Part shown: piece after piece, positions 3,076-54,549 of the stretch
How positions within the stretch are numbered: the first letter of the stretch is position 1
Layout: each line of letters begins with the position of its first letter
Source of the DNA: Macrostomum lignano
Taxonomy: Eukaryota
NCBI GenBank assembly: GCA_002269645.1
Contig: NIVC01002421.1
Span: forward strand, 1 to 64,000
DNA: 64,000 nt
Direction of reading: 5' to 3'
Made by a program: the position numbers and the translations under genes
The notes under the pieces: generated by a model
Database searches by the model: none
What the model was told of the DNA's origin: nothing
Seen by the model: the letters and a program-made list of their open reading frames with translations, nothing else

Positions 3076-3390
3076 ATGGCCGCCTACACACCAGAAAAGG
3101 CTTACACCCGGCGACCTGGCCAGGCTTTTGTGGACGGAGACCTCCACCTTCGGAAGTGCGTCAAGAAAGACGCACAAACACAGGTCGCCGAGTACGATAT
3201 CGATGGCGGCCACTCCATGGCTAAACAAACGGCCGCCGACTATAACGACTGGGGGGTGATCCTGGCCCCAAGAAAGACTCCATGAGACGGGGGCCCGTAT
3301 GAGGCCGCCGTCACCATTAGGCCACGGCCCTCACCGCAGGGCTACCGCCTATATCTATGGAAGATAGGCGACCGCCCGGTCAAGGACTAA
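3076..3390 (+). pseudogene. DAQTQ-family cargo protein, copy with one nonsense codon (TGG>TGA at 3283-3285)
   Basis: Reading through the stop gives DGGPYEAAVTIRPRPSPQGYRLYLW, matching the intact copy 17364-17693 (WEGGPYKAPVTIRPWPTPQGYRQYLW). Confidence 0.75.
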
Positions 3391-3537
3391 TATCAATAGT
3401 ACTAAATGGCCTCGGCGCAACATATACAAAACAAACTATACGCTTGAAACTTTTGCTCGAAGAATACCCATCCTCTGACACAACCACTTATCTAGCACAT
3501 CCTCTTCTACCCCTAATGCAACGTTCACTACCTTTTG

Positions 3538-3670
3538 CAGATTTCTAACCTCTTATATTTGATGAAATACGCACCGGCAACGCGATTTAGTCCCAGCATA
3601 AAGAACCCAAATCCTTGTTCGCACAAGGATTTCGAAAAAAAGGGGGAATTATATTAGAGTTAGAAATCTG
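3538..3670. other. Conserved stem-loop module D (long outer stem plus inner 10-bp hairpin)
   Basis: CAGATTTCTAAC..TATA / TATA..GTTAGAAATCTG outer arms; inner AAATCCTTGT-TCGC-ACAAGGATTT. Confidence 0.7.
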
Positions 3671-4684
3671 AAGTTTTACCTTAAGTTAGTAGATAGATAG
3701 AAATTTATGAAAAGTCCAGGCGCAGCAAAGGGCGAGGCAGAAGAGCACAATGGTACCCATAGATAGCTATTAGAAGGGCAAACAGAAGCAGCAATAAGGC
3801 AATAAATCAAGACAAATAAGAAGGACCGATTCTAATTAAGCCCCTCCCATTCCAGTGAGCAGCAACACCCCGCCGCAGGAACAACGGCACTCAAACCGGC
3901 CGGAGAAGTAAATTAAGTAGCAGCCCGACTTAGGGAACAACGCAGCACGCGGCACGCAGCAGATTTCTGGCGCACCCAGAGGGAGGAAAATGTGCGGCCC
4001 ACCCACGGACTCCAATCCAACCTGAAGAGGCCGAAGAAGGCGAGATCAACCCGAAGTAGTTGACAACCGAGGGAGAGAGAGAGGGCTGTTTAATCATCCA
4101 TGGACAGAGTTAAGAGACGGAAAATTAAGCTCGTTTTATATAACCTTTCTATCCTAGATTTTATCCAACTCAACACATAGATTTGCGAAACCCCGAATAA
4201 TCTCCAACCTTCACACTTAGCAACCTACTAGAACTAACTAAATCCATGTACAACTAGGGGACTGAGTCCCAGATTGTTATTGCTTAAAACTCCCCGCCGT
4301 TGCTAACCTCGCGAGACACATCACCGGCGGCGGGGGGGGCCAAAAATGCTAATTGGTATAAATAGACGCCCATCTCAAACTGGACCGGCGCTTCGTTTTT
4401 CTTGCGCATTTTCGATCTCGAATTGCTCCCTTTGAATTAGTCTCTGGATTATCCAGTTGGCACAAATCTAAGTCTTTAATACAGTTATTTGTCTTAATTG
4501 TCGCGCAGAGCAAATCCTAGAAAGAGTCAAACTCAGCTTAGATACTAGGAGATCCCGTCAGTTTATACGGTTTTCTCCGACGGCCTGATTGAAGAAGTTA
4601 GAGCTATACAAACCTTAGACCGCAAGACATCTATCTTACGAAAGTGAGAACAAAAACTCAAAGGCCCCAGAGACAGCGCGTATA

Positions 4685-4995
4685 CCCTTTGCAGATTTTT
4701 AACTGCTTATATTTGATGAAATAGGAACTGGCACCACGCCTTAGTCACCGCCTAGAGGAACCAAATTCTTGTTAGCACAAGGATTTCAAAAAAGGGGCAA
4801 TCATATGAGTTAGAAATCTGAACTTTTGCCCTAAGTTAGAAGATAGCTATAAATTTATGAAATGCCCAGGCGCATTGAAGGGCGAGGCAGAAAAGAACAA
4901 TGGAACCCCTAGATAGCTATTAGAAGGGCAGACAGAAGCAGCTTTAAGATAAGTGATCAACTGTCAAGTCACTTTAAATATCCGAATCTAATAAA
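4685..4995 (+). mobile_element. Fragment of a further Y unit (stem-loop D 4692-4820 plus downstream block), fused to Gypsy RT by a deletion
   Basis: Homology to 3531-3800 and 9612-9756; breaks at CCGAATCTAATAAA into RT sequence. Confidence 0.65.
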
Positions 4996-7083
4996 AAGAA
5001 GTGGCGAAACACGAGCTACACATCAAGCCCAACATAGAGATAAAGCTTTACAAAAGATATCCCATCCCATACCAATTAATGGGAGAACTACAGAAAACCA
5101 TCGATAGGATGGAAGCCCAAGGGATAATAAAGAAAGCGGCAACTCCATACATCTCGCCAATCTTACTGGTAAAAAAGAAAGCAGAATCGCCCAATGCTAA
5201 CCCTGTTTACCGTCTCTGCGTCGACTTTAGGGACCTCATTATATTCTAGTGCCTGAAAGACAGTCCATGCCCAGAATCCCCGACCTGCTAGCTAAGCTCA
5301 AAGGCTCCATGTACTTCACCACGTTGGATATGGCCCAAGCATTCTTCCAAGTAGCCCTAGAGGAGGAAAGCCAGAAATACTGCGGCATCTAAACCCCGGA
5401 TGGACAAACCTATGTGTTCACTAGAGCACCCATGGGGTTACAATCTTCGCCTGCGGCGCTATCAAGGGCAGTCAGCATAATCTTACAGGGCATACATTGA
5501 GTCTCCACCTACGTGGACGACCTATTAGTGTTTAATGAGACCTTTGAAGACCACCTCAACACGATAAAAACACGCTATCAGCACTCACTAAGCACGGAAT
5601 GAAACTCAGTTGCTGAAATGCAAATTTGCCAAACCGACACAATCAAGCATCCAATACCATGCCTCCAGGCACTGAAGGACGCACAGAAGGAGGATCCATT
5701 CTGCCAGTACATCAGAGCTATGTGGAACGAGCAACCTGGCGGAGAAGATTTGGACTCAAAATAGAAGCGCCATATTGAACGGCACCTAACAGATCATGCT
5801 GAAATTCTGGGCATTATCCACAGAACGGCAGAAAAAACGCAGCAGATAGTACTGCCATTTAAATATCGCGACACAATTTGCTACTCACTGCACGCCCTAC
5901 CCTTGGCCGCACATCTAGATGTCAAGAAGACCTTGGAGAGGATCCGGCGACATTACTTCTGGATCTCCATGGTCCGAGATATACAAGCATTCTGCGACAA
6001 CTGTATGGACTGTGCCAAAAGCAAGTCCGGCAGGATGCATCAAGGCCTCATTCAGATGTCGGAGATACCACTAAAACCGATGGACAAACTGTCAGTGGAT
6101 CTGGTCGGCCCTATGACACCGGCGAGGATAAGGAACGAGTCGGTAACACATTTTTAACCGTTTCGTGCTGCTTCTCCAAGTTTGCCTTAGCGTTCCCAAT
6201 ACCGGACTTGAAAGCCGAAACCACGGCCGAAACACTCTTCCAAGTGTTCTGTACCTTCGGGATACCCGTAGAACTCTCAACGGATAACATCACCAATTTC
6301 ACGGCGACACTACTCACAGATGCCCTAAATATTCTAGGGATACAGCACATTCTAACGTCACCTTACAACCCTCGAGCAAACCATGTGGAACGCCTTCACT
6401 CCACTCTCCACAATATGCTACGACATTACACGGCGGAGAACCCTCACAATTGGCACCAATACCTACAAGCTATAATCCACGCTTAAAACACAGCCAAACA
6501 AGCGTCCTCTAAATACTCACCATTCGAGATAGTGTTCGCCCGGAAGCCACTAATGCCCACAGAATTAACAACACAACTGCAATTCGTACGATACGCAGAC
6601 GAACCCGCATACGCGGAACGAATGCAAGAGGCTATAACCCTAGCCAGAGAAATAGCCCGTCACCACCTACAAGAAGCTCAAAAGAAAAACACAACAAGGG
6701 CAAACAACAGAAGAGTTCCGACCACGATAACAGTAGGAAGCAGGATAATGCTCCAAAATCCAATGAGACAAGCAAAACATCAATCTAAATTTTCTGGACC
6801 ATACGAGGTGGTTAAATGTAACAGTGCCACTTCGGTGCTGATAAAAAAGACAGATGAACCACCGCAAACAGCCTTCCAGGTACATGTGGACAGGCTGAAA
6901 CCGGTGGCCTCACCAGAAGCGCAAGTCTTCCTCCCCGACCTCCGGCCGTGTGATCCCAACCGCCTGCAAAGACAGCAGAAACAGAAGTTCTCGATGGATG
7001 TCGGCATCCAAGTAGAAGATGGAGCGCCGGCGGACACGGCCAGGAAGAAATACAACCTAAGGAGCAAGACCCACCTTCCGTGA
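4996..7083 (+). pseudogene. Decayed Ty3/Gypsy pol: RT (RNase H deleted) plus integrase
   Basis: SPILLVKKK..YRLCVDFRDL, TLDMAQAFFQV, YVDD (~5510), HHCC zinc finger, DLVGP / STDN / VERLH DDE core, GPY motif, VHVDRLKP, C-terminal YNLR; several stops and frameshifts. Confidence 0.93.
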
Positions 7084-7259
7084 CAATTGATGTCATGGGA
7101 AGGGGGGGGGAGAGTACAAAGACCAAAAACATTCATTTTATACTCGTATATGTACTCAGTTGGTATGCGCTGCACTTAACAGTAGAAACACTCACTATTA
7201 ATTACCAATACATACCTGATTAAAATAATTAAAGCACTGACTTATATCACACACAACAG

Positions 7260-7398
7260 ATGTACGACGCTCAGCTTGACTATTTGGACGATGTCTATAT
7301 CGGCGAGGAGACTTCCCCGAATGGAGACGATCGTCAGACCGCTGTTTCAAGACCCGGAGATTCAAGATGAATGGTCGTCAAAGCAGTGTCATCAGTAG
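7260..7398 (+). pseudogene. Internally deleted remnant of the X cargo ORF P (HNH-like)
   Basis: MYDAQLDYLDDVYIGEETSP start and SSKQCH end match the two ends of 13553-14561. Confidence 0.7.
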
Positions 7399-7768
7399 GT
7401 AAGAAAACACCCATAAAACCCAACCAAATAATCCAAATTTAACAATTAAGCGGACAAATTCACGCTTCACCTGACAATTTATTTTTGATTATTCGTACAC
7501 AGTAGTAGTATAACGTAGTAGTGCTATCAAAGATGGACAGAAACACCAGAAAGTAGCACGCATATGGCTTGTAGTATAAAGTAACATTAGTTCGCACGCA
7601 TGATTCTGCGCATAATAAATCATAGCTTAGACCTGTAGCATACGGCAGTTTTAAAAAAGAAAAGTTAAATAGAACAAATACTAAAAATGCTTATATATTT
7701 CCACAAAAAAAATGTTTTCGTCAATCCTTTCGCATAATAGTTACTTAATTCACTGGCAGGTTCCCATA

Positions 7769-8008
7769 TTAAGCAGATAGGGGCCGATAGCGGTACCGGC
7801 AGCAAAACGCCACAATTAAAACGCAGACAACGAGCAGGAGAAATCCGCCTCCGCCTACTCCGCCCAGCACACCTCGGAGCGCTCGGAGCCCAGAATCCGT
7901 CGCTAGAGCTTGATGGGATAGCTCCCTCACGCGCTCCTCCACGGCCAATAAGCGCCGATCCATCCTTGAGAGTAAGCTAGACAATTGCTCCACAGCATGC
8001 TGCGACAT
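7769..8008 (-). CDS. 79-aa coiled-coil + C-terminal transmembrane microprotein (X cargo)
   Basis: ATG at 8008; heptad-like N-terminus, hydrophobic FLLLVVCVLIVAF, then CC-RYRYR; intact paralog at 14952-15191 with mostly synonymous changes. Confidence 0.8.
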   Translation of the reverse strand: MSQHAVEQLSSLLSRMDRRLLAVEERVRELSHQALATDSGLRALRGVLGGVGGGGFLLLVVCVLIVAFCCRYRYRPLSA

Positions 8009-8296
8009 AGTGCCAACGTCAATCCCGTAAAAGCGTAGACAGTATAAGCAGTCAAATTCTATATCCAACACTCGCCAGCGCCGGGGACTCCCTCTCAATT
8101 AAAACTTATATCAGTCCCAGTGGAGGGAACCCCCCTAATAAAAAATCGATCAGTCCGCGGACCCCAAAACCCCCCAGTAGGGGCAAGAGCGGTAAACAAC
8201 CTCAGCGAAGGCCCGTAAAACCCAACCGCGTACATTGTAGCTAAGGATGTACATTGCCAAATAAGAACCAATACAGTTAAAAATCATTCCAGCACA

Positions 8297-8620
8297 ATGG
8301 CTGACCACGGGTGGCGTGCCTATACAGCACTCGATGCTTATCAGAGGCGACCAGGCACCCGTTTTACTGACGTCAACATACATGGGCGGCCCTGTTACAA
8401 GGCAGACGCCCAAACCCAGGCGACTCCGGAAATTATTGATGGGGGACGCTTAGTGGCCGCTGGAACATCGGACCCCGAAGGGGGAGTCATTAGACTCCCC
8501 AGAAGAGAATGGCCTGGGGGCGACTACGTCCCCGCCCCAGACTACGAATGGCCAACGCTCCAGACGCACCGCATGTTCGTCTGGCGCAACCCCAACAAAG
8601 CACCCCCAAATAACAACTGA
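8297..8620 (+). CDS. DAQTQ-family cargo protein (107 aa), unknown function
   Basis: Intact ORF; four paralogs share YxRRPGxxFxDxxxHxxxCxKxDxQTQxxxxxxDGG; synonymous-biased divergence versus 15476-15805. Confidence 0.8.
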   Translation: MADHGWRAYTALDAYQRRPGTRFTDVNIHGRPCYKADAQTQATPEIIDGGRLVAAGTSDPEGGVIRLPRREWPGGDYVPAPDYEWPTLQTHRMFVWRNPNKAPPNNN

Positions 8621-8679
8621 TCGTGCTAACTTAAATTCTAAATAACCTACATTAAATCAAGATATTACGTGACAAATAT

Positions 8680-8797
8680 TAATTTCTAACCCTATATCGT
8701 TCATATTCTTGCGCTATTTCATTTCAGATTCAGGAGATTAATCCTCGTTGCACAAGGATTTCAAAAAAAGGGGGAATAATATAGGGATTAGAAATTA
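8680..8797. other. Stem-loop module D, X-family version
   Basis: TAATTTCTAACCCTATAT / ATATAGGGATTAGAAATTA outer arms; inner AATCCTCGT-TGC-ACAAGGATT. Confidence 0.7.
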
Positions 8798-9300
8798 TGA
8801 AAGTTGGGACAAATAAGAGTTCGCTAAAGGGCAAAGTAAGAAGCAAAAAAAAGCAAGGGGCGAAAGTTCAATTTAAAGATAAGACACCTAAGTGAGAGAA
8901 ATTAAAGAACGGCAAGAAAGTGAAACAAGCTATAGATAAGAAACTAACTCTGACTTTCCCCCAAGATTTCAGACTAAAACCAGATGATATCAAATCGGCC
9001 GAGGTACCAGGCTGAGCCAGTCGGCGCGGTGCCAGGAGAAGCAATACGACACAAAGCCCGACTGGCGGGCGAGATAAAGCAATGGTCAACAGGCCAAGGT
9101 CAGCGGTGACGAACGACCCCAGGGAATAAGAGGACGACTCACCGAGGGACGCACGAGGGGTCTGACGTACGAATCGACTCGAACGATGAACCCTGAACTG
9201 ACCTTTAACCATCGCCTGATGCGACCAATTAACCGATAGCAGATTATCTCTCTCGCCCCGTAGCAACGCGCTAATCTAATGTTGCTGCGTCTGTTTTGGA

Positions 9301-9360
9301 CACCCCGCCGTTGCTAATCAGCGGCGGGGTATGACGTGTATCAAATAATCTATAAAATAG
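9301..9360 (+). promoter_or_regulatory. Putative Pol II core promoter of X: inverted GC boxes, CRE-like TGACGT, TATA
   Basis: ACCCCGCCG-TTGCTAATCAG-CGGCGGGGT-ATGACGTG..TATAAAATAG; repeated at ~16530-16590 and ~16975-17035. Confidence 0.6.
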
Positions 9361-9611
9361 ACACGGCCTTGGCCCCGAAATGGGCAACGGAGAAAAGAGT
9401 CAGAGTTAAGACTGGAAGTCCTGTGCACTTCACAAAACCTTGAGTTTACTTAATCTTCAGCATTTTTGCCGTAGGCGCGAGTAGTAAGCAGCCTCTAGCG
9501 ATCTCTAGTTGTAAGCCCTCTTAGGCTTCAAGGACAGCGAAAGCAATAGAACAAAACCGCTAGACGACCAAGGAGAGAAGCATAACCGAAGCCCGAGAGA
9601 GGAGTCTTACA

Positions 9612-10596
9612 GAAATTTATGAAAAGCCCAGGCGCAGTGAAGGGCGAGGCAGAAGAGTACAATGGAACCCCTAGATAGCTATTAGAAAAGCAAACAGAAG
9701 CAGCTTTACTATAATTAATCAACTGTCAAGTCAATGTGAATAGCCGAATCTAATAAAGCCTCTTTCAATTCCAGTTAGTAGCGTCACCCCGCCGCAGGCA
9801 CAATGGCGACTAAACCGGCCGGGAAAAGCAAACTGAGCAGCGGCCTGACTTAGAGAACAACGCGGCACGCGGCATCTTCTGGCGCACCCTGAGGGAGAAA
9901 ACGTGAGGCCCACCTAGAGACTCCTACCCAACCCGAAGCTGCCCAAGAAGGCGAGATCAACCCCAAGCTGCCTGACAACCGAGAGAAATAGAGGACTGTT
10001 TAATCATTCATGGACAGAGTGTAGAGACGGAAAACTATGCACTTTTTCTATAATCTTTCTATCCCAAATTTTATCCAACTCAACACAGATTTGCGAAAGC
10101 CCGAATAATCTCTAACCTTCACACTTAGCAACCTATTAGAACTAGCTAAATTCATGTACAATTGGGGGACTGAGTCCCAGTTTGTTATTTCTCAAAACCC
10201 CCCGCCGTTGCTAACAACGCGAAGACACCCCACCGGCGGCGGGGGAGGCTAAAAATGCTAATTGGTATAAATAGACGCTCCTCTCAAACTGGAGCGGCGC
10301 TTCGGTTTTCCTGCGCAGTTTTTCGATCTTGAATTGCTCCATTTGAATTAGTTTCTGGATTATCCAGTTGACAGAAATCCGAGTCTCAAATCGATTATTT
10401 GCCTTAACTGTGACATAGAGCAAATCTTAGAGAGACTCCAACTCAGCTTAGATACTAGGAGATCCCGTCAGTTTATACGGTCTCCTCTGACGGCCTGATA
10501 GGAGAGACTAAGAGCTGTAAGAACCTTAGACCGCTAGACATCTATCTTAAGAAAGTGAGAACACGAACTCAAAGGCCCCAGAGAAAGACGCGTATA
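9612..10596 (+). mobile_element. Y-family unit, right part (TATA at 10266), left side interrupted by X1
   Basis: Begins mid-block GAAATTTATGAAAAG (cf. 3702, 4853) and ends CGCGTATA. Confidence 0.65.
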
Positions 10597-10965
10597 CTCG
10601 GGCTTGCTACACTTATTTGCTTGCCTCGATTCTTATTACGCAGCTGTACATCGGATTGAGTTTCTTTGGAGAGGTTAGTAGATGAAAAATGGTCTTTTCT
10701 TTCGTTCTTTGTGAATTTCAATGTGGGTAGAATAGTTCCATATTCTACAGATGGTTCGGTACCTTACCCATTGATTCGTATTCGTAATGAAAAAAACGGC
10801 TCTTGTTCTTGTCTTGCCTTATCTTGTCTTGCTACAGGCACTTGTTCCCCAGTGTCTAGAAGCGGGAATTTGAGAGTGATTGATCACCAGTCTTAATCTC
10901 TTCAGTAGTTGTTATTAACTGTGACCGTATAAATAGTGACCCTGTTATATTTCAACATAACATTT

Positions 10966-11529
10966 GTCTACGAGTTTTTCTATTCAAGGATTCAATTCCA
11001 TCGGTCGCTTGCTTCTGCCCGCGTGCTTGGTGGAGATACGGATAGTTTGATCCTGGCATTGGTTATGGCCAACCCGGAGACGAGTCCTCAGGAGACATTG
11101 TTTAAAGACTTGGTGGAGTGCGGTTTGTTAGATACTAGTAATTATCCACCTTCTCATCCACTTTATACAACAAAGTATAAAGGGAAGTTAATGGCCTGGA
11201 AAGATGAAGTTTGCGGTTGTACGCCGTTGGAGTTTGCATTTCTACGCCCGAAAAACTATTCAATGGTGTATGCAAAGGAAAGCCTCTGTCAGATTGTGCG
11301 TTGCAAGGGCGTGTCGAAGTCAATTGTAAGAGGTATGAAGCACAATGTATTTTTGGGTGCGTTGAAGGATCGAGTTTTGGGGCATGTAACGATGCGGACG
11401 ATTACTTCGCGACGACAGAAGATTTATATTCTTGAGCAGCGCAAGCAGGCGCTTAGCTTTTTCGACACGAAGCGAGCCTGGCTCGATCCCTACTCATCCC
11501 TCCCATTTGGTCATTGGCGGTTGACTTGA
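10966..11529 (+). pseudogene. C-terminal fragment of Maverick/Polinton (adintovirus-like) protein-primed DNA polymerase B
   Basis: YEFFY, GDTDSL (motif C), DTSNYPPSHPLY, KDE, EFAFLRPKNYS, KGV, LSFFDTKR, LPFGH; homology appears to stop upstream of ~10966. Confidence 0.85.
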
Positions 11530-11798
11530 CTTGTTCTCTCTGTCTCTATTTTCTGTCTGTTTATGCTTTTTCTGCTCACAATATATGCGCGCAATTATCG
11601 AATGTATATACAAGAATCTGCCTTTCTTTCTTTCTCTTCGTATTTTTTCGTTTTTCTAGGCCAATGATAGCAGTGCAGGGGATTAGTACTAGGCTTAGTT
11701 TTTTTGATTGGGACGAGGATTACGAGGGTAGTACCAGACTTATTTTAGAGGACGACGATCCTGCTAAGCATAAGATGAACTATGATCCCGCAGCCACG

Positions 11799-12281
11799 AT
11801 GAGCTCCGACGCTTGAACGACGGTCCCGCTGCGCATAGTGCTCACGGATGCCGGGGCAGTAATGCCTCGGCGAGCTACGGCCGGGTCGGTGGGCTATGAC
11901 CTAGCCACGTGCGAAGACCGCACTGTGGAGGCCTTTGACACAGCCATCATTTGCACCGGCCTCCGGGTGATGCTGCCGCTAGGCACCTATAGTCAGATAG
12001 CGAGCCGGTCCAGTTGGGCCAACCCAGGCCTCAATGTGCAGGGTGGCGTGGTTGACCCGGACTATACCGGGGAACTCCGCGTGATCCTGCACAACACGTC
12101 AGATGAGAAAGTTCATCTACTGTGTGCCACCAGCGTGGTTCAACTGATTCTGGAGCGCTGCGTCAGGCCCCCGGTAGAAGTCGGCCGAGCTCGCAAGGGC
12201 CAGCTGCCGGGGGTTTGGCACCGACAACCGGAGCCGGTGGCGGTTCGCGAGACGGGCGGCATGGGCAGCACTAACATCTGA
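11799..12281 (+). pseudogene. dut: Trimeric dUTPase with an in-frame TGA at 11814-11816
   Basis: All five motifs recognisable (VGYDL, SRSS, GVVDPDYTGEL, QLI, RETGGMGSTN); ATG 11799 is in frame with the downstream ORF. Confidence 0.9.
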
Positions 12282-12381
12282 TGCTGCTCGCGCCCGGAGC
12301 CCGTCGGTCGGTGGTGGGAATTGGTGGTGGTTTTTAATACAATATACTGCTCGTGGATTTAACCGCTGTGTGTATAAGCAA

Positions 12382-12725
12382 ATGCAGTTGGTTCTTTTAG
12401 TACAATTAAGTGGGGTGGGAACACAAGGCCAACAGAAGAAGAAGCGAGTGCGTTTACCATCTTTCAGGGGAGCTTCATTTGCCGGGGGTTACCAATTCTG
12501 CGGCCCGGGACACGATTGAGAGAACGTTTGGCGAGGGGCGATACTGGGAAGAATCGGCTCGATAAATTGTGTCTCTTACATGACCTGGCATACGAGAAGC
12601 ACTCGGACGTGGCAGAGCGTAAAAGGCCGATCAACAACTCGAAGCAAGAGCTCGAGAGATTGCTACGGATCCTACAACTAAGTGGGGGGGACGTTTGGCC
12701 GCGAAACTGGTGTCCCGTGTTTTCT
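12382..12725 (+). pseudogene. Parvovirus-type phospholipase A2 domain protein (Maverick/adintovirus PLA2-like), two frameshifts
   Basis: GYQFCGPG / TRLRERLARGDTGKNRLDKLCLLHDLAYEK / ADQQLEARAREIATD across three frames; shifts fall in short homopolymer runs. Confidence 0.8.
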
Positions 12726-13552
12726 AGCATTTTTCTAGCGAGCATGATTAGTGGTGGTGGCGCTGAGAATCTGTTTAAGCGCTGTTATAATCGTTTGCGT
12801 TCTTTCGCGATGAATTATCTGCGTATTAGATTGCGGTAATTTGCTTACTCGTTTTTAATGCGTATGGACTTGCGGCGAATTCAGTCAAATATACTTTGCA
12901 GAGATAAATGGCCAAGGCTAAGGAAGAATTGGACTTTGCATTCAATATTTCTTTTAGGAGAGAGCTAGTGTTGGTTAGTGTGTCGTATAAGATAACTACA
13001 CTATACATACACTATACTTACATCTATAACTACATTTATAACTATTTCATTTCAGACCCAGGAGAATAATCCTCGTTGCACAAGGATTTCAAAAAGGGAA
13101 TAATATAGGGATTAGAAATTAGGACAAGCCTGAACAAAATAAAAGGTTCGCTAAAGGGCAAAGTAAGAAGCTAAAACCAGTGGGCGAAAGTTCAATTTAG
13201 AGATAAGACACTTAAGTGAGAAATTAGAAGAACGGCAAGAAAGCAAAAAAAATCATAGATATGATATGAACTTAATTGTCACTTTCCCCCAAAATTTCAG
13301 ACCAAACGAGATTTCAAAATCGGCCGAGGTACCAGGCAGAGTCAGTCGGCGCAGTGCCAGGAGAATCGAGACGACATGTCACAGAAAGCGGGGGGAGAGT
13401 AGAAAGACTAAAAAACATTCATTTTCATATATATGTACTCAGTTGGTATGCGCTGCACTTTACAATATAAAATATTTACTGTTAAGTACGGCTCGTATCT
13501 ATACATACCCGATTAAAATAACTTAAGCACAGACTCATATCACACACAACAG

Positions 13553-14561
13553 ATGTACGACGCTCAGCTCGACCACTTGGATGATGTCTATATCGGCGAG
13601 GAGACTTCCCCCCGAATGGAGACGATCGTCAGACCGCTGTTTTAAGAACCGGAGATTCAAGATGAATGGTCCAAAAATAGTCGTTTGCAACAAAAATATC
13701 AGCGGTTGCGGCGCGAATGGAAATCAAGAGGGCCACACATCCCCTACGAGATGGGTGACAACACGAAGTGGATGGCTCGATCCGATGACACAACGTACGT
13801 GATACGATTTCACCAAGCTAGTACAACAGACAGTAATCTCCAGCCGGCCAGGTCGGTACAATGATGTAAAATTGTTTGACATCCACCAGGAAATGCTAGA
13901 AATTCCGAGAACGACCAATATGGTGACACATCTGACATGCCAGCGTATCTGCAACAACCCGAGGGACCTCCGATGGTTAAGCGCCGATTAAAACATACTA
14001 GAGCGAAACGCGACTCTCATTTTTGATTACACAAACCAAGATGCCTTCACAGGTCACCATTTCATAGTAATGACAAGGTGGCTCCGCTCACTCATAACGC
14101 ACCCCTGGGGACCTGCAGAAAACCACATGGAACGCCACGTCACTCTGAGAACCTACTTGATAAGCACGCTGCACTATCACGGGATCCATATTTCCCGACA
14201 AGAAATAAGAAAACCGGTAACGCTAGCTTACTCACCGGCCACGTTCCAGTGGCCACAACTGAAAACAGCACTGCTAGCCACCGCACACCCAACCCGGAAA
14301 CAGACGGGTAGTAGAGGCGAAGTTCCCGTAAGGACCGAAAGGGGAGGGTACAGATGGTGAGATTTGACACGATGGTCGAGCGGTTACTCGTGTTCGTGGA
14401 CCAATCGTATTGTCGTACTATCGCACCAAAGTGCTCCCCACAACCCAACACCGGACGAGCTAGCCCTGTGTTTAGGGTTGGTTCAAAAGGTGAAGGGAAA
14501 AATAGGTCTAACGCACAATAGAGAAATTAACAGGTATGATTCGTCAAAGCAGTGTCATTAG
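13553..14561 (+). pseudogene. Decayed ~335-codon cargo ORF P with HNH/His-Me-finger-like motif
   Basis: One frameshift and three stops; HQEMLEIP..VTHLTCQRICNNPRDLRWLSAD*N resembles HxxCxxxxCxNPxHLx7N; the first stop is CAA in the 7260 copy. Confidence 0.5.
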
Positions 14562-14951
14562 TAGGTAAGAAAACACCCATAAAATCCAACAAGAATAATT
14601 TCATACTTAACATTAGCGGACAAACCCATGCTTCAACTAACGATTTATTTATGCTTACAAACGTAGTACGCGTAGCAGCGCCAAAAAAACATCGATTAGA
14701 AATAAAATAAAATGCGTCATACACATAGCCTATAGTAGGTAGCAATACCGTCGTTGAATGATTACGCATGCCCACGCGCTCTTGTGCATAATAATTCTTA
14801 GCTGCAGACCCTTAACATGCTAAAGTATTTTACGGTTACATAAAACAATACAAAACTACCTATATACCGTTATACTAAAACAAAGCAGTTTGTGTCAATC
14901 ATTTTCGCAGAATACAGCAGTCACCTAATAACTTCCCAACGGGTGCCATCG

Positions 14952-15191
14952 TTAAGCCGATAGGGGACGATAGCGATACTTGCAGCAGAACACCGCAATT
15001 AGAACACATAAGATGAGCAGGAGAAATCCACCGCCGCTAACGCCGCCCAGCACGCCTCGCAGCGCCCGTAGCCCAGAGTCAGTAGCCAGAGCCTGATGGG
15101 ATAGCCCTTCCACGCGCTTCTCCAAGACCGATAGTCGCCGTTCCATCTCCGAAAGTAATTTAGACAGTTGTTCAATAGCATGCTGCGACAT
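14952..15191 (-). CDS. 79-aa coiled-coil + TM microprotein, copy 2
   Basis: Intact, same length as 7769-8008. Confidence 0.8.
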   Translation of the reverse strand: MSQHAIEQLSKLLSEMERRLSVLEKRVEGLSHQALATDSGLRALRGVLGGVSGGGFLLLILCVLIAVFCCKYRYRPLSA

Positions 15192-15475
15192 AGTGCCAAG
15201 CCAAAAAAGTTGCAGACAGAATGGAACGAGCTAATCCAAGATAGTTGACTCTCGCCAGCGCCGGGGATACTTTCACAGTAGAACTTATACTAGGCCTAGA
15301 GACGGCCACCTTAATAAAATCGATCGCCCCGCGGACCCCAAACCCCCCCCCCAGTAGGGGTAAGAGCGGTAAATAACCTCAGCGAAGGCCCATAAACCCA
15401 CCCGCGTACATTGAGCTAGCTAAGGATGTACACTGCCAAATAAGAACTAACACAGACAAAAATCATTCCAGCGCA

Positions 15476-15805
15476 ATGGCTGACCGCGAGTGGCGTCCCT
15501 ATACAGCACTCGATGCCTATCAGAGGCGACCGGGCACCCGTTTTAGGGACGTTAATATACATGGGCAGCCCTGCATAAAAGCAGATGAGCAAACGCAAGT
15601 TACACCGGACGACCTCGATGGCGGACGGTCTGTGGCCTCCGGAACCTCGGACCCTGAAGGAGGAGTCATCCGACTCCCCAGAAGGGAATGGCCAGGGGGC
15701 GACTACGTTTCCACCCCTGACAACTCATGGCCAACACTTCAAACTCACCGCCTGTTTGTCTGGCGTAAACCCAACTGGGCGCCCCCGGATGAGGAAAATG
15801 ACTAA
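15476..15805 (+). CDS. DAQTQ-family cargo protein (109 aa)
   Basis: Intact paralog of 8297-8620. Confidence 0.8.
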   Translation: MADREWRPYTALDAYQRRPGTRFRDVNIHGQPCIKADEQTQVTPDDLDGGRSVASGTSDPEGGVIRLPRREWPGGDYVSTPDNSWPTLQTHRLFVWRKPNWAPPDEEND

Positions 15806-15907
15806 ATGCGAGGCTGCAACTGCTAATTAACTAATTGACACAATTCACATCTCACTATCAATTATTACGTTTAATAATTAATTAATCATTTAATTAATGG
15901 CTGCACT

Positions 15908-16023
15908 TAATTTCTAACCATATATCGTTAAAATTCTTACGCCATTTCATTCCAGATTCAGGAGATTAATCCTCGTTGCACAAGGATTTCAAAAAAAGGG
16001 GGAATAATATAGGGATTAGAAAT
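15908..16023. other. Stem-loop module D, X-family version
   Basis: Homologous to 8680-8797. Confidence 0.65.
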
Positions 16024-17363
16024 CAGAATAATCGGGACAAAATAAAGGTTCACTAAAGGACAAAATAAGAAGCTAAAAGCAGGGGGGCGAAAGTTCAATT
16101 TAAAGATAAGACACCTAAGTGAGATAAATTAAAGAACGTCAAGAAAGCGAAATAAATCATAGATATGATAAGAATTTAATTGTAACTTTCCCCCAAGATT
16201 TTAGACCAAACCCGATGACATCAAGTCGGCCGAGGTACCAGGCAGAGCCAGTCGGCGCGGTGCCAGGAGAATCGATACGACATGATACCCCGACTGGCGG
16301 GCGAGATAGAGCAATGGTCAACAGGCCAAGTCAGCGGTGGCGTACGGCCAGGGAGCAAGAGGACGATTCACCGAGGGACGCACGAGGGGTCTGACGTGCG
16401 AATCGACTCGAATAATGAACTCTGAACTGACCTTTAACCATCGCCTGATGTGACAAACTAATAGATATCAAATTATCTCTCTCGCCCCGTAGCAACGCGC
16501 CAATCTAATGTTGCTGCGTCTGTTTTGGCACCCCGCCGTTGCTAATCAGCGGCGGGTATGACGTGTACCTAAAATTCTATAAAATAGACACGGCCTCGGC
16601 CCCGAAATGGGCACTCCGGGAAGATTTAAGCTTCAGAACTGGAAGTCTTGTGCACTTCGCCAATAAATCTAAAAGGACTCATATTTGTTCTTTGTGCTAA
16701 AGGCACGAGTCATAGTCAGCCAAGTAGCGATCTCCTTTGTAAGCTCTCTTAGGCTTCGAGGACAGTGGAAGCAATAGAACAAAACCACTAGACGACCAAG
16801 AAGGAGAGAAGCATAGCCGAAGACCTAAGAGAAGTCTTACACGACATGATACCCCGACTGGCGGGCGAGATAGAGCAATTGTCAACAGGCCAGGGTCAGC
16901 GGTGACAGCTATCAAATTATCTCTCTCGCCTCGTAGCAACGCACTAATCTAATGTTGCTGCATCTGCTTTGGCACCCCGCTGTTGCTAATCAGCGGCGGG
17001 GGATGACGTGTACCTAAAATTCTATAAAAATAGACACGGCCTCGGCCCCGAAATGAGCAACCTGAGAAGAATCCAAGGGACAGCAAGAGTTCCAGTGCAA
17101 TTCACGGAAATCCCAAGATTACTGTTCGTTATTTGTGCTACAGGCACGAGTCTTGGCCAACAAATTGCGATCTCTGTTGTAAGATCTTTTAGGCTCAAGA
17201 TCGAGTGAAAAGCTATATTGATCAAGAACAGGAATTAAAAGGTCAGACTTAGTCAAAAATAGTTAGAGCCTAAGAGAATTCTTACACTACTAAGGGATAT
17301 TTTGGGCAGAGAAAAACACGAGCCAGGTCGCCGAGCTTACGAGCTTAATTTTAGCGCATACAC

Positions 17364-17693
17364 ATGGCCGCTTACACCAGCGATAAAGTCTACGCCCGGC
17401 GACCTGGCCAAGCTTTTGTGGACGTGGATATCCATGTCTACAGGTGCGTCAAAAAAGACGCACAAACGCAGGTCACCGAGTGTGACATAGATGGTGGCCA
17501 TTCAGTGTCCACCCAAACCGCCGAGTCGGACAACGATTGGGGACCCGTGTTGCCTCTCACGAAGATCCCATGGGAGGGAGGCCCCTACAAGGCCCCCGTG
17601 ACCATCCGGCCGTGGCCCACGCCGCAGGGCTACCGCCAATATTTATGGGCCAAAGGTGCCCGCCCAGAGACCGAGGAAGGCGGCGATAATTAA
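17364..17693 (+). CDS. DAQTQ-family cargo protein (109 aa), Y type
   Basis: Intact ORF, paralog of 3076-3390. Confidence 0.8.
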   Translation: MAAYTSDKVYARRPGQAFVDVDIHVYRCVKKDAQTQVTECDIDGGHSVSTQTAESDNDWGPVLPLTKIPWEGGPYKAPVTIRPWPTPQGYRQYLWAKGARPETEEGGDN

Positions 17694-17814
17694 AGCGGCC
17701 CCTAGCTATAACTATGAATTATCTCTTTTTAACTAACTATTTTCCATTTTATCTATCTATATACCTCAGCCAGCATATCTTCCCTACCTCAATATAACGC
17801 TTAATTACCTTTTA

Positions 17815-17944
17815 CAGATTTCTAAGTCTTATATTTGATGACATACGCAACCGCAATGCGATTTTAGTCCAAGCATAGAGGACCCAAATCCTTGTTAGCA
17901 CAAGGATTTGAAAAAGGGGCAATCGTATAAGAGTTAGAAATCTG
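17815..17944. other. Stem-loop module D, Y-family version
   Basis: 18/19 complementary outer arms (17815-17833 / 17926-17944); perfect 10-bp inner stem 17886-17909. Confidence 0.75.
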
Positions 17945-20375
17945 AAGTTTATCTTAAGTTAGAAGAAGATAGTTAAGTCCCTTTCCATTCCAGTCAGTAG
18001 GGACAACCCGCCGCAGGAACAATGGCGATTAAACTGGCTGGGAGAAGCGGCCCAGCTTAAAGAACAACGCGGCACGCGGCATCTTCTGGCGCACCCTGAG
18101 GGAGAAAACGTGAGGCCCACCTACAGACTCCTATCCAACCTGAAGTGGCCCAAGAAGGCGAGATCAACCCCAAGCTGCCTGACAACCGAGAGAAACAGAG
18201 GACTGTTTAATCTTCAATGGACGGAGTTAAGAGACGGAAAATTAAGCTCTTTTCCTGTTATTTGTCTATCCCAAATTTTGTCCAATGCAACACATAGATT
18301 TCCAAAAAACCCGAATAATCTCTAACCTTCACACTTAGCAACCTACTAGAACTAACTCGATTCATGTACAACTAGGGGACTGAGTCCCAGATTTTTATTG
18401 CTTAAAACCCCCCGCCGTTGCTAACCACGCACGCGAAGACACCTCACCGGCGGCGGGAGACGCAAAAATGCTAATTGGTATAAAATAGACGCCCATCTCA
18501 AACTGGAGCGGCGCTTCGTTTTTCCTGCGCAGTTTCCGATCTTAAATTGCTCCATTTGAATTGGTCTCTGGACTGTTCCAGTTGGCACAAACCAAAGCCT
18601 TAAATCAATCATTTGTCTTAATTGTTGCGCAGAGCAAATACCAGAGAGAGTTACCCTCAGTCTAGATACTAGGAGATCCCGTCAGTTTATACGGTTCTTC
18701 TCTGACGGCTTGATAGGAGAGATTAAGAGCTGCACGAACCTTAGACCGCTAGACACCTATCTTAGAAAGTGAGAACATCAACTCAAAGGCCCCAGAGAAA
18801 AACGCGTATAAAGATTTTTCGGTCCCGAGCGGCGCTACCTCGGATCTTGGAAAAGACCTGTCTTCGAACAGCTGAACTTGTGTTTCACAGTTTCTTTGTG
18901 TTATCAGACGAACACGCGCGCCAACCGCTATCTCCGTTGTAATTTGCGAGTTAAGCTAGAACCGATAAGGAGGGTCTTAAAATGGGGGCAATTATAGAGG
19001 GCTCGGAAATTCACTAGCATAGGAAGTTCTTTCGAGACGCGTTTAAGCTGGACGAAGCAAAGAATTATCAGTATAGGCAGAGGAAAGACAAATAAGACAG
19101 ATAAGATGGTAGAAGGCCGAATGCGGGCAAACAACAGTGACCCATAGCAGCATATGACAAATTCACAGCAGCCCCCAAACCCAAATCTGGCAATCAATCC
19201 CGAAGGGCGTGGGAACCGAAGAGTGGACGCGCGATCCGATGTATGCGGAAATGCAGTGGAAAGACTCAAAAACTGACCTCCACCTCCCCCGCTCGATCGC
19301 TCGAACTCAACCAACGTAACCCGCAAGTTTAGCGTCAAAACCGTAAAAAGTGGTTTGTTTCGGCCCTAAGGCGCTTAACTTGTTTTACTCAGAGCTTGGC
19401 CTCGTAAAAATAACCGTTTTACTATTAAACACTATTCTGTGATTTATACGGTCATCGTATGTAGCAATAACAACTGCCTTTAGTTTAAGGCTAGTAATTT
19501 TTATACTTGGTTAATTCAAAATATATTACTCTACCAGAACAAAACGAATGGTCCTAATGCAAAGTTATTATCCATAAATCTATGAAATTAAAGACATTAA
19601 AATCAATCCACACAAATTGAAATGATGTTTTTTAATTGATAGCGCTAGTTGCTGTCAATGCCGAAGCATCAACGATAACCAGCTGTGCGTTTAAACTCAC
19701 CAAACAGAGCCGTAGAATTTAAAGAATTCCAGCCCGTCTAGCTCGTAAAAGCCATGGCGAGGGAGAGACGACAAGACTGTCGAGCAGCGCGTGTGCTGAT
19801 ATATTATAGAAAGGCCGCTTGTGCATGCACAGGGGTTGCTGGACACCCGGGCATGTGTGGGCAATCCAGATTGGCCGAGAGGGAGAGGGAGACAAGGGGA
19901 GAGAGAGAAGAGAGAGACTCAGTTTTCTGTACAGGCCCAAGGCTTCCGTTCTGGGTTTCAAGACCTTGTCAAGGCCGAAGAGCCTCGTTTCCGCGGCCCC
20001 TCTTCCGAGTGGGGGGGGGCTTGGGGTTGGTGTTGCGTCTGTTGGCTGATGGCTGAGTTCGTAAATGTGCACATGACTCCACCCTACGTTTTTCAATTCG
20101 TCTATTAGGGCAGAAAAGCTAGGACGGGTAAAAGATAGGACGTGCTTGAAATTGGTCTTCTGCTTTTCGTGGCGGACCCTGATAAGTGAAAATTCATACT
20201 TTTTTCGTGTGCTCAAGGTTCTAAGGAATTAGATTCGGCTTCGGGATAAGTCTGCTTCGAGCTAGAATGTTCATTTATCTGTCCAACCAAAACCAAACAA
20301 CATTTTTACTCCTGTATCTGTATCGGATGGCAATAGGATTACAGATGCTCTGCTCTGCCTTCGACTTCGATCATG

Positions 20376-21290
20376 GCCCCAAATGAGAATCACGGCGTAA
20401 AATGAGAATCATGGCCCTAAAATGAGAATCATGGCCCTAAAATGAGAATCATGGCCCTAAAATGAGAATCATGGCCCTAAAATGAGAATCATGGCCCTAA
20501 AATGAGAATCATGGCCCTAAAATGAGAATCATGGCCCTAAAATGAGAATCATGGCCCTAAAATGAGAATCATGGCCCTAAAATGAGAATCATGGCCCTAA
20601 AATGAGAATCACGGCGTCAAAATGAGAATCGTGGCGTAAAAATGAGAATCATGGCCCCAAAATGAGAATCACAGCGTTAAAATGAGAATCATGGAGCCAA
20701 AATGAGAATCATAGAACCAAAACGAGAATCATGGAACCAAAATGAGAATCATGGAACCAAAATGAGAATCATGGAGCCAAAATGAGAATCATAGAACCAA
20801 AACGAGAATCATGGAACCAAAATGAGAATCATGGAACCAAAATGAGAATCATAGCCCCAAAATGAGAATCACAGCGTTAAAATGAGAATCATGGAGCCAA
20901 AATGAGAATCATAGAACCAAAACGAGAATCATGGAACCAAAATGAGAATCATGGAACCAAAATGAGAATCATGGAGCCAAAATGAGAATCATAGAACCAA
21001 AACGAGAATCATGGAACCAAAATGAGAATCATGGAACCAAAATGAGAATCATGGAACCAAAATGAGAATCATAGCCCCAAAATGAGAATCACGGCGTCAA
21101 AATGAGAATCATGGCCCTAAAATGAGAATCATGCCCCAAAAATGAGAATAATGACCCCAAAATGAGAATCACAGCGTCAGAATGAGATTCATGGCCCTAA
21201 AATGAGAATCACGGCATCAAAATGGGAATCATTTAACAAAATGAAAATCATGGCCCCAAAAGGAGAATCACAGCGTCAGAATGAGAATTA
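20376..21290. repeat. 20-bp minisatellite (AAAATGAGAATCATGGCCCT) with a homogeneous 5' block and variant 3' block
   Basis: Direct inspection. Confidence 0.95.
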
Positions 21291-22159
21291 TGGCGCTAGA
21301 CAGAGGTTCACTGAACTACATAACAGCAACTACGAGGTAAATATTAGAGACTTTAACAAAACCCATTTTCAGTAGAATTCAAACAGCCCTATCCGTTCAC
21401 ACTGGAGATTTCAGCTTCTGTTACCTGTAGCAAGCAATTCCTGAATTAGCCACTGATTAAACTCAGCGCAAGTTAACCCACACCAGACAGAGCCAGAACT
21501 CGCAAACCCCTTCCAAGCCCTAGCGCGAGAGGCAGTCGGGCGCAGAAGGACTACTGTACAGTTAACCCTTCTACCATATCTAGAAACTAGATTATAAAAT
21601 GCAGAGCGCACCACACTATGAAAGGGTTAGAGAAATGACAGGTCGCAAGACGCTAGATAGGGTGAGGGAGAGACGCAGAGAGAGTTCGGGCAGTTATGAT
21701 CTGCAAGCAGTGCCAAACCCAAAGCTGAACTAAGCTGCAAATAAACCCTTTTTTCTCTTGCATGGCATTTGCTTGCTAGAAATGGCCAGGTTGGAGAGCA
21801 ATTGTTAGCATATTATTAATGCAGTACCGCCACTATGAGCATGTTAAATTCAGATCTGTTTTTGCAAATAAACTCAATTTAACATAAAAATTAGGCGAAT
21901 ACAGTCCTGAGTTACAATAGATAAAAACTCACCAAATGATTCGCAATTACTACCATATAGAAATCTGTTATATTGTAAGTAATTAGGATTCTAGAAAGAG
22001 ATAAAAATTAAGATAATCGTCTCGTATTGCGCTTTCTCAGTTTTCTGTGTGCTCAATGATCTCTCTTGCCCTCTCTATGTAGTGGAATGGGCGACGCCCG
22101 AATCCCCACTGCGTCTTCGGATCGCCCTGCAGCTAAGTCAAGCCCCCTCTACGAGTATT

Positions 22160-26103: not shown

Positions 26104-28315
26104 TCAAATGATTTTGAACGCGTAGAGTCCCGTAAAGGACGCAGCATTTGCGTCAGCAGTGCCGAACACCGACAAGTCGCTACCAGCAGAGCCAGTTTTC
26201 TCAACGATGTCAAAGCCGTCCTTAGTCGCGTCGTAAACTTTCTTATTCACCATCAGCTTCTTCAGCCTTGGCGATGACAGCTTGAATCGGATCTCGGAGT
26301 TGGCAGGCAGGTTGCCATCACGAGGACAGACCAGCGTGACCTGCTCTTCAATAACACTGGTGTAGGAAGTCGGAAACGGTTTCGGTTGCTTCATGGGCTT
26401 CACGCACTCAACCAGGAAATTTGCCAGCATCGGAAGTGAGTTGCTCTTTGATCCACTTTCCTTACAAAACAGCTTTAGCTGATAAAAACCAGCGTGACCC
26501 ATTCTAAGACTGATTTTAAGAAAGCCTTCATTGTATTCAACGAAGCTGAAGCTTTCTTCTCTCGCGCTTTTATCAGCACTAAGCAATTCTGCCGACGCTG
26601 AAAGTGAAGTAGAAGCGGGAATTTTCAGTTGGAACTCACTTTGAGCACCGCTGTCAACTTGCAGCCAAAAACCTTCCTTAGAACAGAAATTATGTTTTGA
26701 AAAGCCGAACTTCTCTGGACTCTCGTGTAGTCCGTAGTATCCCAGACTGTCGTCAGGAAATTCGGGAAGACTGCGGTCAGACTTGGACTGAAGGTGGTAC
26801 GAGACGATGCAGTCGGATGTCTTTGCAGCTTCATTCGTTTTTCCAAACACGTCCAGTTTCCAGTAGATGCCACTCGATGGAGGTCGTGCAGTCACCGTGA
26901 CCTCGTTTTTGTGGTGATTGAGCACTGTAGCAACGTACTTGTCACTGCTCAGTCTCTCGCCTGTGCTCGGGTTTACAAACTTTGCACTGAATGACGTCAG
27001 TGGTTTTCCGGTTCCTCTGAACTTCAGCGTCACCTCGCCGTCTACATCAACGAGAGCTTTTTTGTGAGACATGAGCTCGACCTGGTGCTCAATGCAAGCT
27101 TTTTCGCGCTTTACTCGGTTGGTAAAAGTGTCCAGATCGATCGGGTTCTTCAGCAGTTGCCACTTCTTGCTCTCAGCCATGTCGGAGTTCATATAGGGAA
27201 AGTGCGCTTCGATGAACACCTCGGGATCTGTGAGAAAGTAAAAGTCAGTCTCTTCTCTTTCAAACTTGTGATCGGAATTGACGTGACCAGCGCCCCAGGT
27301 TGTCTCAATGAATCGCCATTCGCCATTCAATTTCACAGCGTTCCATGCATGATCGGTGTCCTTGTCAGTCGTAAGTGGTTTAGTCGGATTGTAGCCAAAT
27401 CCTTTCGAGTAGCCGCTGATCTTGACGCACTCGATGCCCAAGAGTCTGAAAATGTTTAAGTAAAGTGTTTCGCTATTTCATAATATATTTTGCCTGTCGA
27501 ACTCAGGAAACGTATTAAATATTTCAAAGAAGTTCACAATGCTTTATGTATTGACTAAAGAAATTAACTAAAGAAATTTGCTTTATACTACTTACTGAAG
27601 TAGACTGAGGCTGATTGAAGCGTATCCTTCGCACACCGAAGTCCCATTCTTGAGGACTGATTGCGGATCGTTGGGAGACTTTTCTTTTTTCCCGAAGTAT
27701 CCGTCAATATCGTAACTGCAGCATGGGGATGCGAAAAATAATGGTGTTCTCACGTCTGAAAGTGCTCAACAGGAAGAGAGCAGCTTATCACCTACCTGAT
27801 GTTAGCTGTGACCCATTTGTAAACAGCTCGAATTTTTTCTAAATCAGTGCTTGCTGCCGAGCCGAGGTAGGTGGCCAGGGACTCAAGCGACTGCTTAGCG
27901 GCCGGCGGAGTCTGAGGGGAAATATATGGAATGCTTTTGAAGCCTGTTCGACGCTTGAAAGAGATTAAATATTGGAAAAATAGGCAAATAAATTTATTTT
28001 TAATAGCCTAGTTTCACGAGACCATTTCTTTCGACCCAAAGCACCTTCTGCCAACAATGAAACATTCCAATTAAATCATTTTGATAACGGGCCTGAATTA
28101 TGAGCCAATTAGCAAAATCGCATTTCGCATTGCTGGACTATTACAGTTTTGTAGCTGAAACTGCGCCTAATTTCATAATAAATTCGCTTCTCTTTACTCA
28201 CTTTTCTAACGTGCTCGTCGATTTTCTTGAGCGCCGAGAAATCCGCAGTCGTCCTGGCCGACTGTTTGGCCGCCGGGGTAGGCGCCACCGCTCTTTTGCT
28301 CGGGGCGCAGCCCAT
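26104..28315 (-). CDS. KY/hillarin-like transglutaminase-fold protein, 563 aa (exons 28202-28315, 27796-27911, 27596-27715, 26104-27445)
   Basis: GT-AG junctions in phase; VCEGYA (Cys), HAWNAV (His), FIETTWG (Asp position is Glu); N-terminus MGCAPS. Confidence 0.88.
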
Positions 28316-54547: not shown

Positions 54548-54549
54548 AC

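Follow-up and report, generated by a model that had tools for sequence, protein, structure and literature searches.

The 64,000-nt stretch of contig NIVC01002421.1 analysed here in full (hereafter the window) carries, at positions 13377..16841 of the plus strand, a discrete unit of 3,465 bp that starts with TGTCA and ends with TTACA. This unit, referred to as X_b, probably represents the solo long terminal repeat (LTR) of a retrotransposon from the Ty3/Mdg4 (Gypsy) group. The host is probably a flatworm of the genus Macrostomum, in agreement with the original prediction of an invertebrate element. X_b is best read as a solo LTR because it has integrase-type ends, is flanked by a 5-bp target-site duplication and contains no internal repeats, and because a second copy, X_a, occupies the place of a 3' LTR behind a pol gene. 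The location of its post-pol accessory genes within the unique 3' region (U3) of the LTR is the best explanation for this organization. It is not proven, because a conserved hairpin and purine tract lie where a conventional polypurine tract (PPT) would be expected, were these genes internal.

Both junctions of X_b could be read as CGACA/TGTCA...TTACA/CGACA. The left junction (13376/13377) is ...GAGACGACA/TGTCACAG... and the right junction (16841/16842) is ...GTCTTACA/CGACATGATACC..., the two copies of CGACA being located at 13372..13376 and 16842..16846. The duplication has a size within the 4-6 bp range of LTR elements. The ends are of the TG...CA type with a short inverted repeat, TGTCA...TTACA being found in X_b and X_a and TTACA also in a third, partial copy, X_c. 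At the 5' terminus (13377..13408, plus strand) TGTCA is followed by a purine-rich tract, both being conserved in X_a (7091-7122). Self-comparison of the window identified the flanks of X_b, 13042-13376 and 16842 onward, as the two halves of an older partial X 3' region, which is X_c. The sequence 13042-13376 aligns with 15944-16275 within X_b at 87% identity, and the sequence from 16842 onward aligns with that from 16271 onward. Uninterrupted paralogs of the insertion site are present within X_b itself at about 16255-16290 (...GGAGAATCGATACGACATGATACCCCGACTGG..., with the core ...GGAGAATCGATACGACATGATACCCC...) and, with a similar sequence, in X_a at about 9030-9065. Since both contain CGACA only once, they represent preserved empty sites, and the two copies at the ends of X_b are a real target-site duplication and not a chance 5-mer, a chance match of one 5-mer having a probability of 1/1024. 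The TGT...ACA ends and 5-bp duplication that had been predicted for this unit were thus recovered, and the empty site that had been proposed near 16270 is joined by a second one in X_a.

The longest direct repeat within X_b measures 21 nt (76% identity) and the longest inverted repeat 26 nt (73% identity), as expected from the earlier claim that the unit has no long internal repeats. X is therefore not a small element with LTRs or terminal inverted repeats (TIRs) of its own. TIRs of tens to hundreds of base pairs, such as those of Ginger-like TIR DNA transposons and Mavericks/Polintons, were not found, the terminal inverted identity of X being of 3-4 nt, and no long inverted repeat was detected in X or across the whole window.

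The termini of X were independently delimited by comparing its copies. X_a (7091..9611, plus strand) is 2,521 bp long and 77-86% identical to X_b. Its first bases (TGTCATGG...) and its last bases (...GTCTTACA) are those of X_b and its flanks are unrelated to the flanks of X_b. X_c is split by X_b into a left half (13042..13376) and a right half (16842..17285), both on the plus strand, and ends with ...TTCTTACA at 17285, after which the sequence is unrelated. The 5' terminus is thus set by two copies with unrelated upstream DNA and the 3' terminus by three copies with three unrelated downstream sequences. The shorter length of X_a reflects the absence of about 0.87 kb of the region of an open reading frame (ORF) called ORF-A. 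Removal of a retro-processed intron was rejected as the origin of this difference: the junction does not resemble a GT..AG removal, and its 3-nt microhomology fits a deletion. The 5 nt on either side of X_a differ (ATTGA and GAAAT), and an independent insertion of X_a beside pol was ruled out on this ground. The flanks of X_b diverge from the internal paralog by 13-19%; this divergence and the order of the pieces do not fit a tandem duplication as the origin of the arrangement.

X_a is preceded on the same strand by a degraded Ty3/Mdg4-type pol (4996..7090, plus strand) in which the Pfam domains RVT_1 (2e-14), Integrase_H2C2 (1e-16) and rve (1.5e-9) were recognized, with the reverse transcriptase (RT) before the integrase. 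The RT, the H2C2 zinc finger and the rve core expected of a pol linked to an LTR were thus all found. The gene is truncated at its 5' side, with neither gag nor protease. It has decayed through one internal deletion that takes most of RNase H, at least two frameshifts and at least five in-frame stops. X_a starts 7 nt past the stop codon of this gene, in the place expected for a 3' LTR. The A-rich strand bias is common to X_a, X_b and pol (AT skew of +0.21 to +0.26) as compared to -0.11 for the neighbouring sequence at 10598-13041.

A similar arrangement was found outside the window. The closest integrase in the protein collection is P0001 (54% identity), encoded on a 3-kb JGI metagenome contig, L001, where the integrase frame runs beyond the end of the called gene into a second ORF. 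In L001, the integrase is followed by 9 nt, then by TGTCGTTATGG..., a 243-aa ORF (MYSLEFDYVDD...) and an antisense ORF encoding a coiled coil, a transmembrane (TM) segment and a basic tail, which overlaps the 3' end of the 243-aa ORF. X is collinear, with an ORF start (MYDAQLDHLDD...) at 13553 and an antisense ORF at 14952-15191. The ORFs of X resemble those of L001 only weakly, with E values of 0.005-0.04 in a tiny database, and the ORF-A of L001 has no relative besides itself in our searches. Because L001 and X share this collinear order, the attachment of X to the end of pol is considered ancestral and not accidental.

The 3' part of X contains a nearly invariant promoter block (16470..16615, plus strand) composed of a GC palindrome, TGACGT and TATAAAA (16578-16584). 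The TATAAAA lies 263 bp from the 3' end of X_b, in agreement with the predicted TATA promoter about 260 bp before the end, and the block of about 150 nt surrounding it is almost invariant in X_a, X_b and X_c. Downstream of it, an R/U5-like part (repeat and unique 5' region) varies among the X copies, and the last 15 nt or so are conserved again. This succession of an invariant block, a variable part and a conserved tip fits what would be the end of a U3, an R/U5 and an integrase attachment end. On the basis of the TATA position, U3 would extend over about 13377-16607 and R/U5 over about 16608-16841.

X carries two intact ORFs. The first one, ORF109, encodes an orphan protein of 109 aa in X_b (15476..15805, plus strand) and of 107 aa in X_a (8297..8620, plus strand), the two being 79% identical. 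Units of another family of the window, W, also carry it: the copy of unit W3 (17364..17693, plus strand) encodes 109 aa that are 43% identical to ORF109 of X_b, and that of unit W1 (3076..3402, plus strand) has one in-frame stop. Three of the four copies in the window are thus intact. The second ORF is encoded on the minus strand, at 14952..15191 in X_b (79 aa) and at 7769..8008, in an ATG-started form, in X_a. It is intact in both copies and its product has an N-terminal coiled coil, a Gly-rich linker, one TM helix with Cys and a short basic tail. The ratio of nonsynonymous to synonymous substitution rates (dN/dS) of ORF109 is 0.19 between X_a and X_b (dS 0.75) and 0.22-0.28 against the intact W copy. 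That of the antisense ORF between X_b and X_a is 0.20. With such ratios, both ORFs were under purifying selection as the element lineages diverged. A pyrimidine-rich YAG/CRCA motif resembling a splice acceptor precedes the ATG of ORF109 by 4-22 nt in all four copies, which suggests a 3' splice site or trans-splice site. By contrast with these two ORFs, the ORF-A-like region of X_b (13553..14285, plus strand, with a 3' bound approximated from the length of the 243-aa ORF of L001) has no intact frame. Its first 17-30 or so codons are recognizable and it contains several breaks, which are not countable without an alignable relative. This region is mostly deleted in X_a, and the ORF at 14070-14360 found no support as a gene. 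Three protein genes had been predicted in the first 2.4 kb or so of the unit: two of them are retained, with dN/dS of about 0.2, but the third one, at 13553, is a mere remnant.

Neither protein could be related to a known family. A word search of 5.8 billion proteins returned no relative of ORF109. A profile search of 1.84 billion representatives gave a single true match, a UniRef gene model of Macrostomum lignano that includes a W-type ORF109 fragment (pairwise E 4e-23). This match makes Macrostomum the very probable source of the window. The other profile matches, to bacterial repeat proteins in which many short stretches contributed to the score, were judged spurious. Searches of Pfam, PHROGs and PDB with ORF109, ORF-A and the membrane ORF gave nothing significant, the best scores being those of DUF7310 (E 0.003) and Orthoreo_P10 (E 0.07), both below cut-off. 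In Pfam and PDB, ORF109 had no match of any kind and the membrane ORF only non-significant ones. Exact-sequence look-ups were empty for ORF109 (X_b and W3), RING2, one host ORF and P0009. The AlphaFold model of ORF109 had no confident fold (predicted local distance difference test, pLDDT, of 31).

Unit W1 carries two paralogous Sina-type RING ORFs at 745-1329 (194 aa) and 1669-2268 (199 aa), with PF21362 as best match (E 1e-9), which lie upstream of its ORF109 copy. In their 5' parts, W1 and X have no significant DNA similarity. The cargo differs upstream of a common module made of ORF109, a hairpin and the promoter: X has ORF-A and the antisense membrane ORF, and W has two Sina-like RING ORFs. 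The idea of U3 as a multi-gene cargo bay was somewhat strengthened by these RING ORFs, which occupy the place of the X genes, but has to be reduced for X to two genes, one of which is antisense.

The hairpin of this module is a palindrome with an 8-bp stem (AATCCTYG...CAAGGATT), after which come an A-run, a G-run and AAT. In X_b, it reads AATCCTCGTTGCACAAGGATT and then AAAAAAAGGGGGAAT (15968..16028, plus strand). It is located downstream of ORF109 and, with AAAAAAAGGGGGAAT, is better conserved than any other non-coding motif that the X and W units have in common. Copies were found in these units at 3610-3631, 4764-4785, 8740-8795, 13068-13119, 15968-16028 and 17887-17908. The motif could be a PPT or a central-PPT-like site, but it could also signal the 3' end of ORF109 or be a binding site.

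The following scenario would account for X_b as a solo LTR. A full element (X, internal region, X), with X copies presumably paired as its LTRs, would have been inserted by its own integrase into the older LTR copy X_c, and the 5-bp staggered cut would have duplicated CGACA. The internal part would later have been lost when the two LTRs recombined, leaving X_b. In the X family, plus-strand priming, which sets the start of U3, would occur at the very end of pol. The whole stretch from pol to R would thereby become U3, with the decayed sense ORF-A, the antisense coiled-coil/membrane ORF and ORF109, and would be duplicated at both ends of the element. The great length of the X LTR would thus result from priming at the end of pol, which puts the accessory genes into U3. 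The TATAAAA block at 16578 would be the promoter of the element and would fire outward, across the 230 nt or so of R-U5. ORF109 could be produced from a spliced or spliced-leader (SL) trans-spliced subgenomic RNA, given its acceptor-like motif, and the membrane ORF from an antisense transcript.

Several observations weigh against this scenario. The window contains no direct pair of X copies flanking gag-pol, only the 3' position being observed (X_a), and no copy of X placed as a 5' LTR and followed by a primer-binding site and gag. No further X copy was found in IMG/VR and two metagenome scans, the host genome not being among them. The oversized LTR of the original prediction is partly supported by its ends, its target-site duplication, the start of X_a 7 nt past the RT/integrase gene and a strand composition like that of pol, but lacks the LTR pair and the primer-binding site. 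The AATAAA at 16663, in the putative R, is not kept in X_a or X_c. As to the predicted U3-R-U5 organization, the promoter block does lie where U3 should end. The 20 nt that precede X_a lack a purine-rich composition, while L001 has GATAGAGGAA directly upstream; strong purine tracts sit inside X, at 13383-13408 and with the hairpin at 15968-16028. Finally, the bracketing of pol and X_a by two copies of a discrete unit of about 145 bp, Y5, is left unexplained by a solo LTR. The left copy is located at 4853..4995 and the right copy, which abuts the 3' end of X_a, at 9611..9757, both on the plus strand, with 89.7% identity.

Part of these observations would be expected from a more conventional layout, in which the ORFs would be internal, the LTR would be short and X would represent an internal 3' region plus its LTR. 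The short LTR would be either the 0.8 kb or so that follow the hairpin and purine tract (about 16030-16841) or Y5. We consider this layout unlikely, even though the hairpin and AAAAAAAGGGGGAAT have been kept between the diverged X and W families and would stand, were the ORFs internal, at the exact place of a 3' PPT. It is also favoured by the starts of X_c and of a W fragment, which are located 25-80 nt before the hairpin, and internal post-pol antisense ORFs are known elsewhere (PMC11963269). Moreover, Y5 forms direct repeats around pol and X_a, is solitary in W1 (3699-3845) and is precisely missing from W3 at 17972/17975, which resembles a series of LTR, solo LTR and empty site. However, a short LTR cannot produce X_b, which begins at the very base adjacent to pol in X_a, has the shared TTACA end and is surrounded by a perfect 5-bp duplication for which empty-site paralogs exist. 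A deletion or rearrangement yielding the same structure would need two independent breakpoints overlapping exactly by CGACA and coinciding with the TGT and ACA ends. No TG is found within about 100 nt past the purine tract, where such an LTR should start. Y5, for its part, has neither TG..CA ends nor a clear target-site duplication, X_b and X_c stop at TTACA without it, and the sequence following X_c scores at shuffle level in comparisons with Y5. The unlike flanks of X_a (ATTGA and GAAAT) also argue against its separate insertion into an element with Y5 as LTR. A Retand-like organization, with an accessory region present once and followed by a PPT and an LTR starting with TG, was not found, the accessory region lying within the unit flanked by the target-site duplication.

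Still less probably, X would not be an LTR but an independent non-autonomous cassette that a Gypsy-type integrase mobilizes in trans, the post-pol location in X_a and L001 resulting then from capture or fusion. X does have its own genes and promoter, only single copies of it were seen and its ends are of the integrase type. Nevertheless, its sole strong promoter fires outward from a position 263 bp before the 3' end, which means that a lone X cannot transcribe itself fully, and it has no terminal direct repeats for strand transfer. In addition, L001, with an integrase that is only 54% identical, has retained the connection to the end of pol. A segmental rearrangement or a mis-assembly in a repeat-rich, polyploid assembly, without any insertion, is highly improbable. 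In the first 19 kb, X, W and Y pieces do form a mosaic in which several junctions are unexplained, and the M. lignano assembly has been described as redundant (PMC12801592). However, neither rearrangement nor chimeric joins leave 5 bp duplicated at the two junctions along with canonical TGT and ACA ends, and flanks diverged by 13-19% from the internal paralog are not those of a recent tandem duplication.

The solo LTR reading and the conserved hairpin would be reconciled by an ancestral short LTR whose priming site shifted later. A broader proposal can be built on this possibility, which we regard as doubtful: the priming site would have moved from the hairpin and purine tract to the end of pol, the entire accessory region would have become U3 and the LTR a modular site of gene acquisition, and each remaining solo LTR would be a self-contained gene-plus-promoter cassette, with such cassettes dispersed over the genome. 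The antisense protein, a tail-anchored coiled coil with a TM segment, a membrane-proximal Cys and a basic tail, could then be a minimal, membrane-active substitute for env.

The surroundings of X_b are rich in other repeats. The first 19 kb form a nest of Y, W, pol, X_a, X_b and X_c pieces in one orientation, and this layout of 1-19000 is reminiscent of unistrand PIWI-interacting RNA (piRNA) clusters. The Y repeat (987 bp) is present at 1-454, 3699-4685, 9611-10597 and 17975-18810, and all copies end with ...GCGTATA. Its promoter module has a grammar of the X type (GC palindrome ... TATAAATAGAC). The copies Y0 and Y2 are 96.7% identical and the other pairs 84-86%, a difference that is unexplained, as is the tandem repetition of the last 22 nt of Y at 433-476 (22-mer). 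The segment 10598-13041 has an AT skew opposite to that of the surrounding retroelement pieces. It contains an ORF with its own GDTDS motif (10936-11529), without match in Pfam, PDB or PHROGs, that is possibly a C-terminal piece of a family-B DNA polymerase, a clear dUTPase (11838-12281, Pfam 4e-22) and a phospholipase A2 (PLA2)-like region (12370-12839, YQFCGPG...HDLAY) with one frameshift and a Pfam E value of only 0.024. This segment may have come, as a fragment, from an element of the DNA-virus-like or Maverick-like kind or from another retroelement. Further downstream, three tandem paralogous ORFs of 409-575 aa are encoded on the minus strand at 26104-27441, 31033-32760 and 34811-36040, with 76-95% DNA identity. 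By eye, from their sequence, we take them to be host genes of the kyphoscoliosis-peptidase/transglutaminase-like type. Large minisatellite arrays are located at 20280-21300, 29240-29870, 52465-54550 and 58100-60260, and their repeat units measure 20, 9, 40 and about 32 bp, respectively. In the host part of the window, the GC content varies between 27% and 64%. No tRNA gene was found in the window.

Genes located in U3 or overlapping it are well known in retroviruses, such as sag of mouse mammary tumour virus (MMTV), nef of human immunodeficiency virus (HIV) and the bel/bet region of foamy viruses. As in these viruses, coding sequence downstream of the plus-strand priming site would be duplicated with the LTR in X and would be expressed from a subgenomic or spliced RNA. 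In contrast to them, X has several whole genes, one of which is antisense, in an invertebrate element of the Gypsy type, and its proteins have no sequence similarity to the MMTV sag, HIV nef and foamy-virus bel/bet proteins. The LTR retrotransposons of Macrostomum belong mostly to Ty3/Mdg4, with the Mag, CsRN1 and Gmr1/Osvaldo clades, and no ORF within their LTRs is mentioned for M. lignano in that description (PMC12801592). X resembles Ty3/Mdg4 solo LTRs by its TG...CA ends, 5-bp target-site duplication, TATA near the 3' end, linkage to RT and integrase and nesting among repeats. It differs by its 3.5 kb and its two conserved ORFs, one being antisense.

Accessory ORFs behind pol have been reported in several other lineages. 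Plant Retand/Tat Gypsy elements have 2.9-6.6 kb after pol with antisense ORFs of possibly regulatory function (PMC11963269). The X region is likewise post-pol with an antisense ORF but, whereas the Retand region is internal and present once per element, it behaves as part of the integrating terminal unit in X_b, and the proteins are unrelated. The giant Ogre elements of plants have LTRs of 1.9-6.5 kb and internal extra ORFs, long terminal repeats being regarded as non-coding, and the planarian Gypsy-like Burro has RING, TRAF-like and dUTPase modules in a giant polyprotein or in internal ORFs (PMC6431247). Similarly to Burro, the window includes the Sina-like RING ORFs of a W unit and a nearby dUTPase. 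Contrary to Burro, there is no giant gag-pol polyprotein but a 2.1-kb degraded RT-integrase remnant, and the RING and dUTPase ORFs are separate and located in other units. The LTR retrotransposons of bdelloid rotifers have diverse internal ORF3s in sense orientation, among which small TM ORFs have been proposed to be env-like (PMC5408684). The modular capture of extra post-pol ORFs, including small TM ORFs, is common to them and to X, but the membrane ORF of X is antisense and inside an LTR-like unit. Long LTRs (Ogre), post-pol accessory ORFs (Retand, bdelloid ORF3s and Burro) and retroviral U3 genes are thus already known. What would be new is an invertebrate Gypsy-type element whose integrating terminal unit combines these features by containing whole genes under selection, including an antisense one.

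Should X not be an LTR, it would be an ordinary nested fragment in a transposon graveyard. If it is one, it would represent a rare non-retroviral case of complete genes, kept by selection, carried in an LTR. Every insertion would then bring two copies of the accessory genes, every solo LTR would retain these genes with an outward-firing promoter, and the length and content of an LTR could expand merely through relocation of the priming site. ORF109 and the antisense membrane protein would also be two new orphans among the accessory proteins of flatworm retroelements, a poorly known repertoire.

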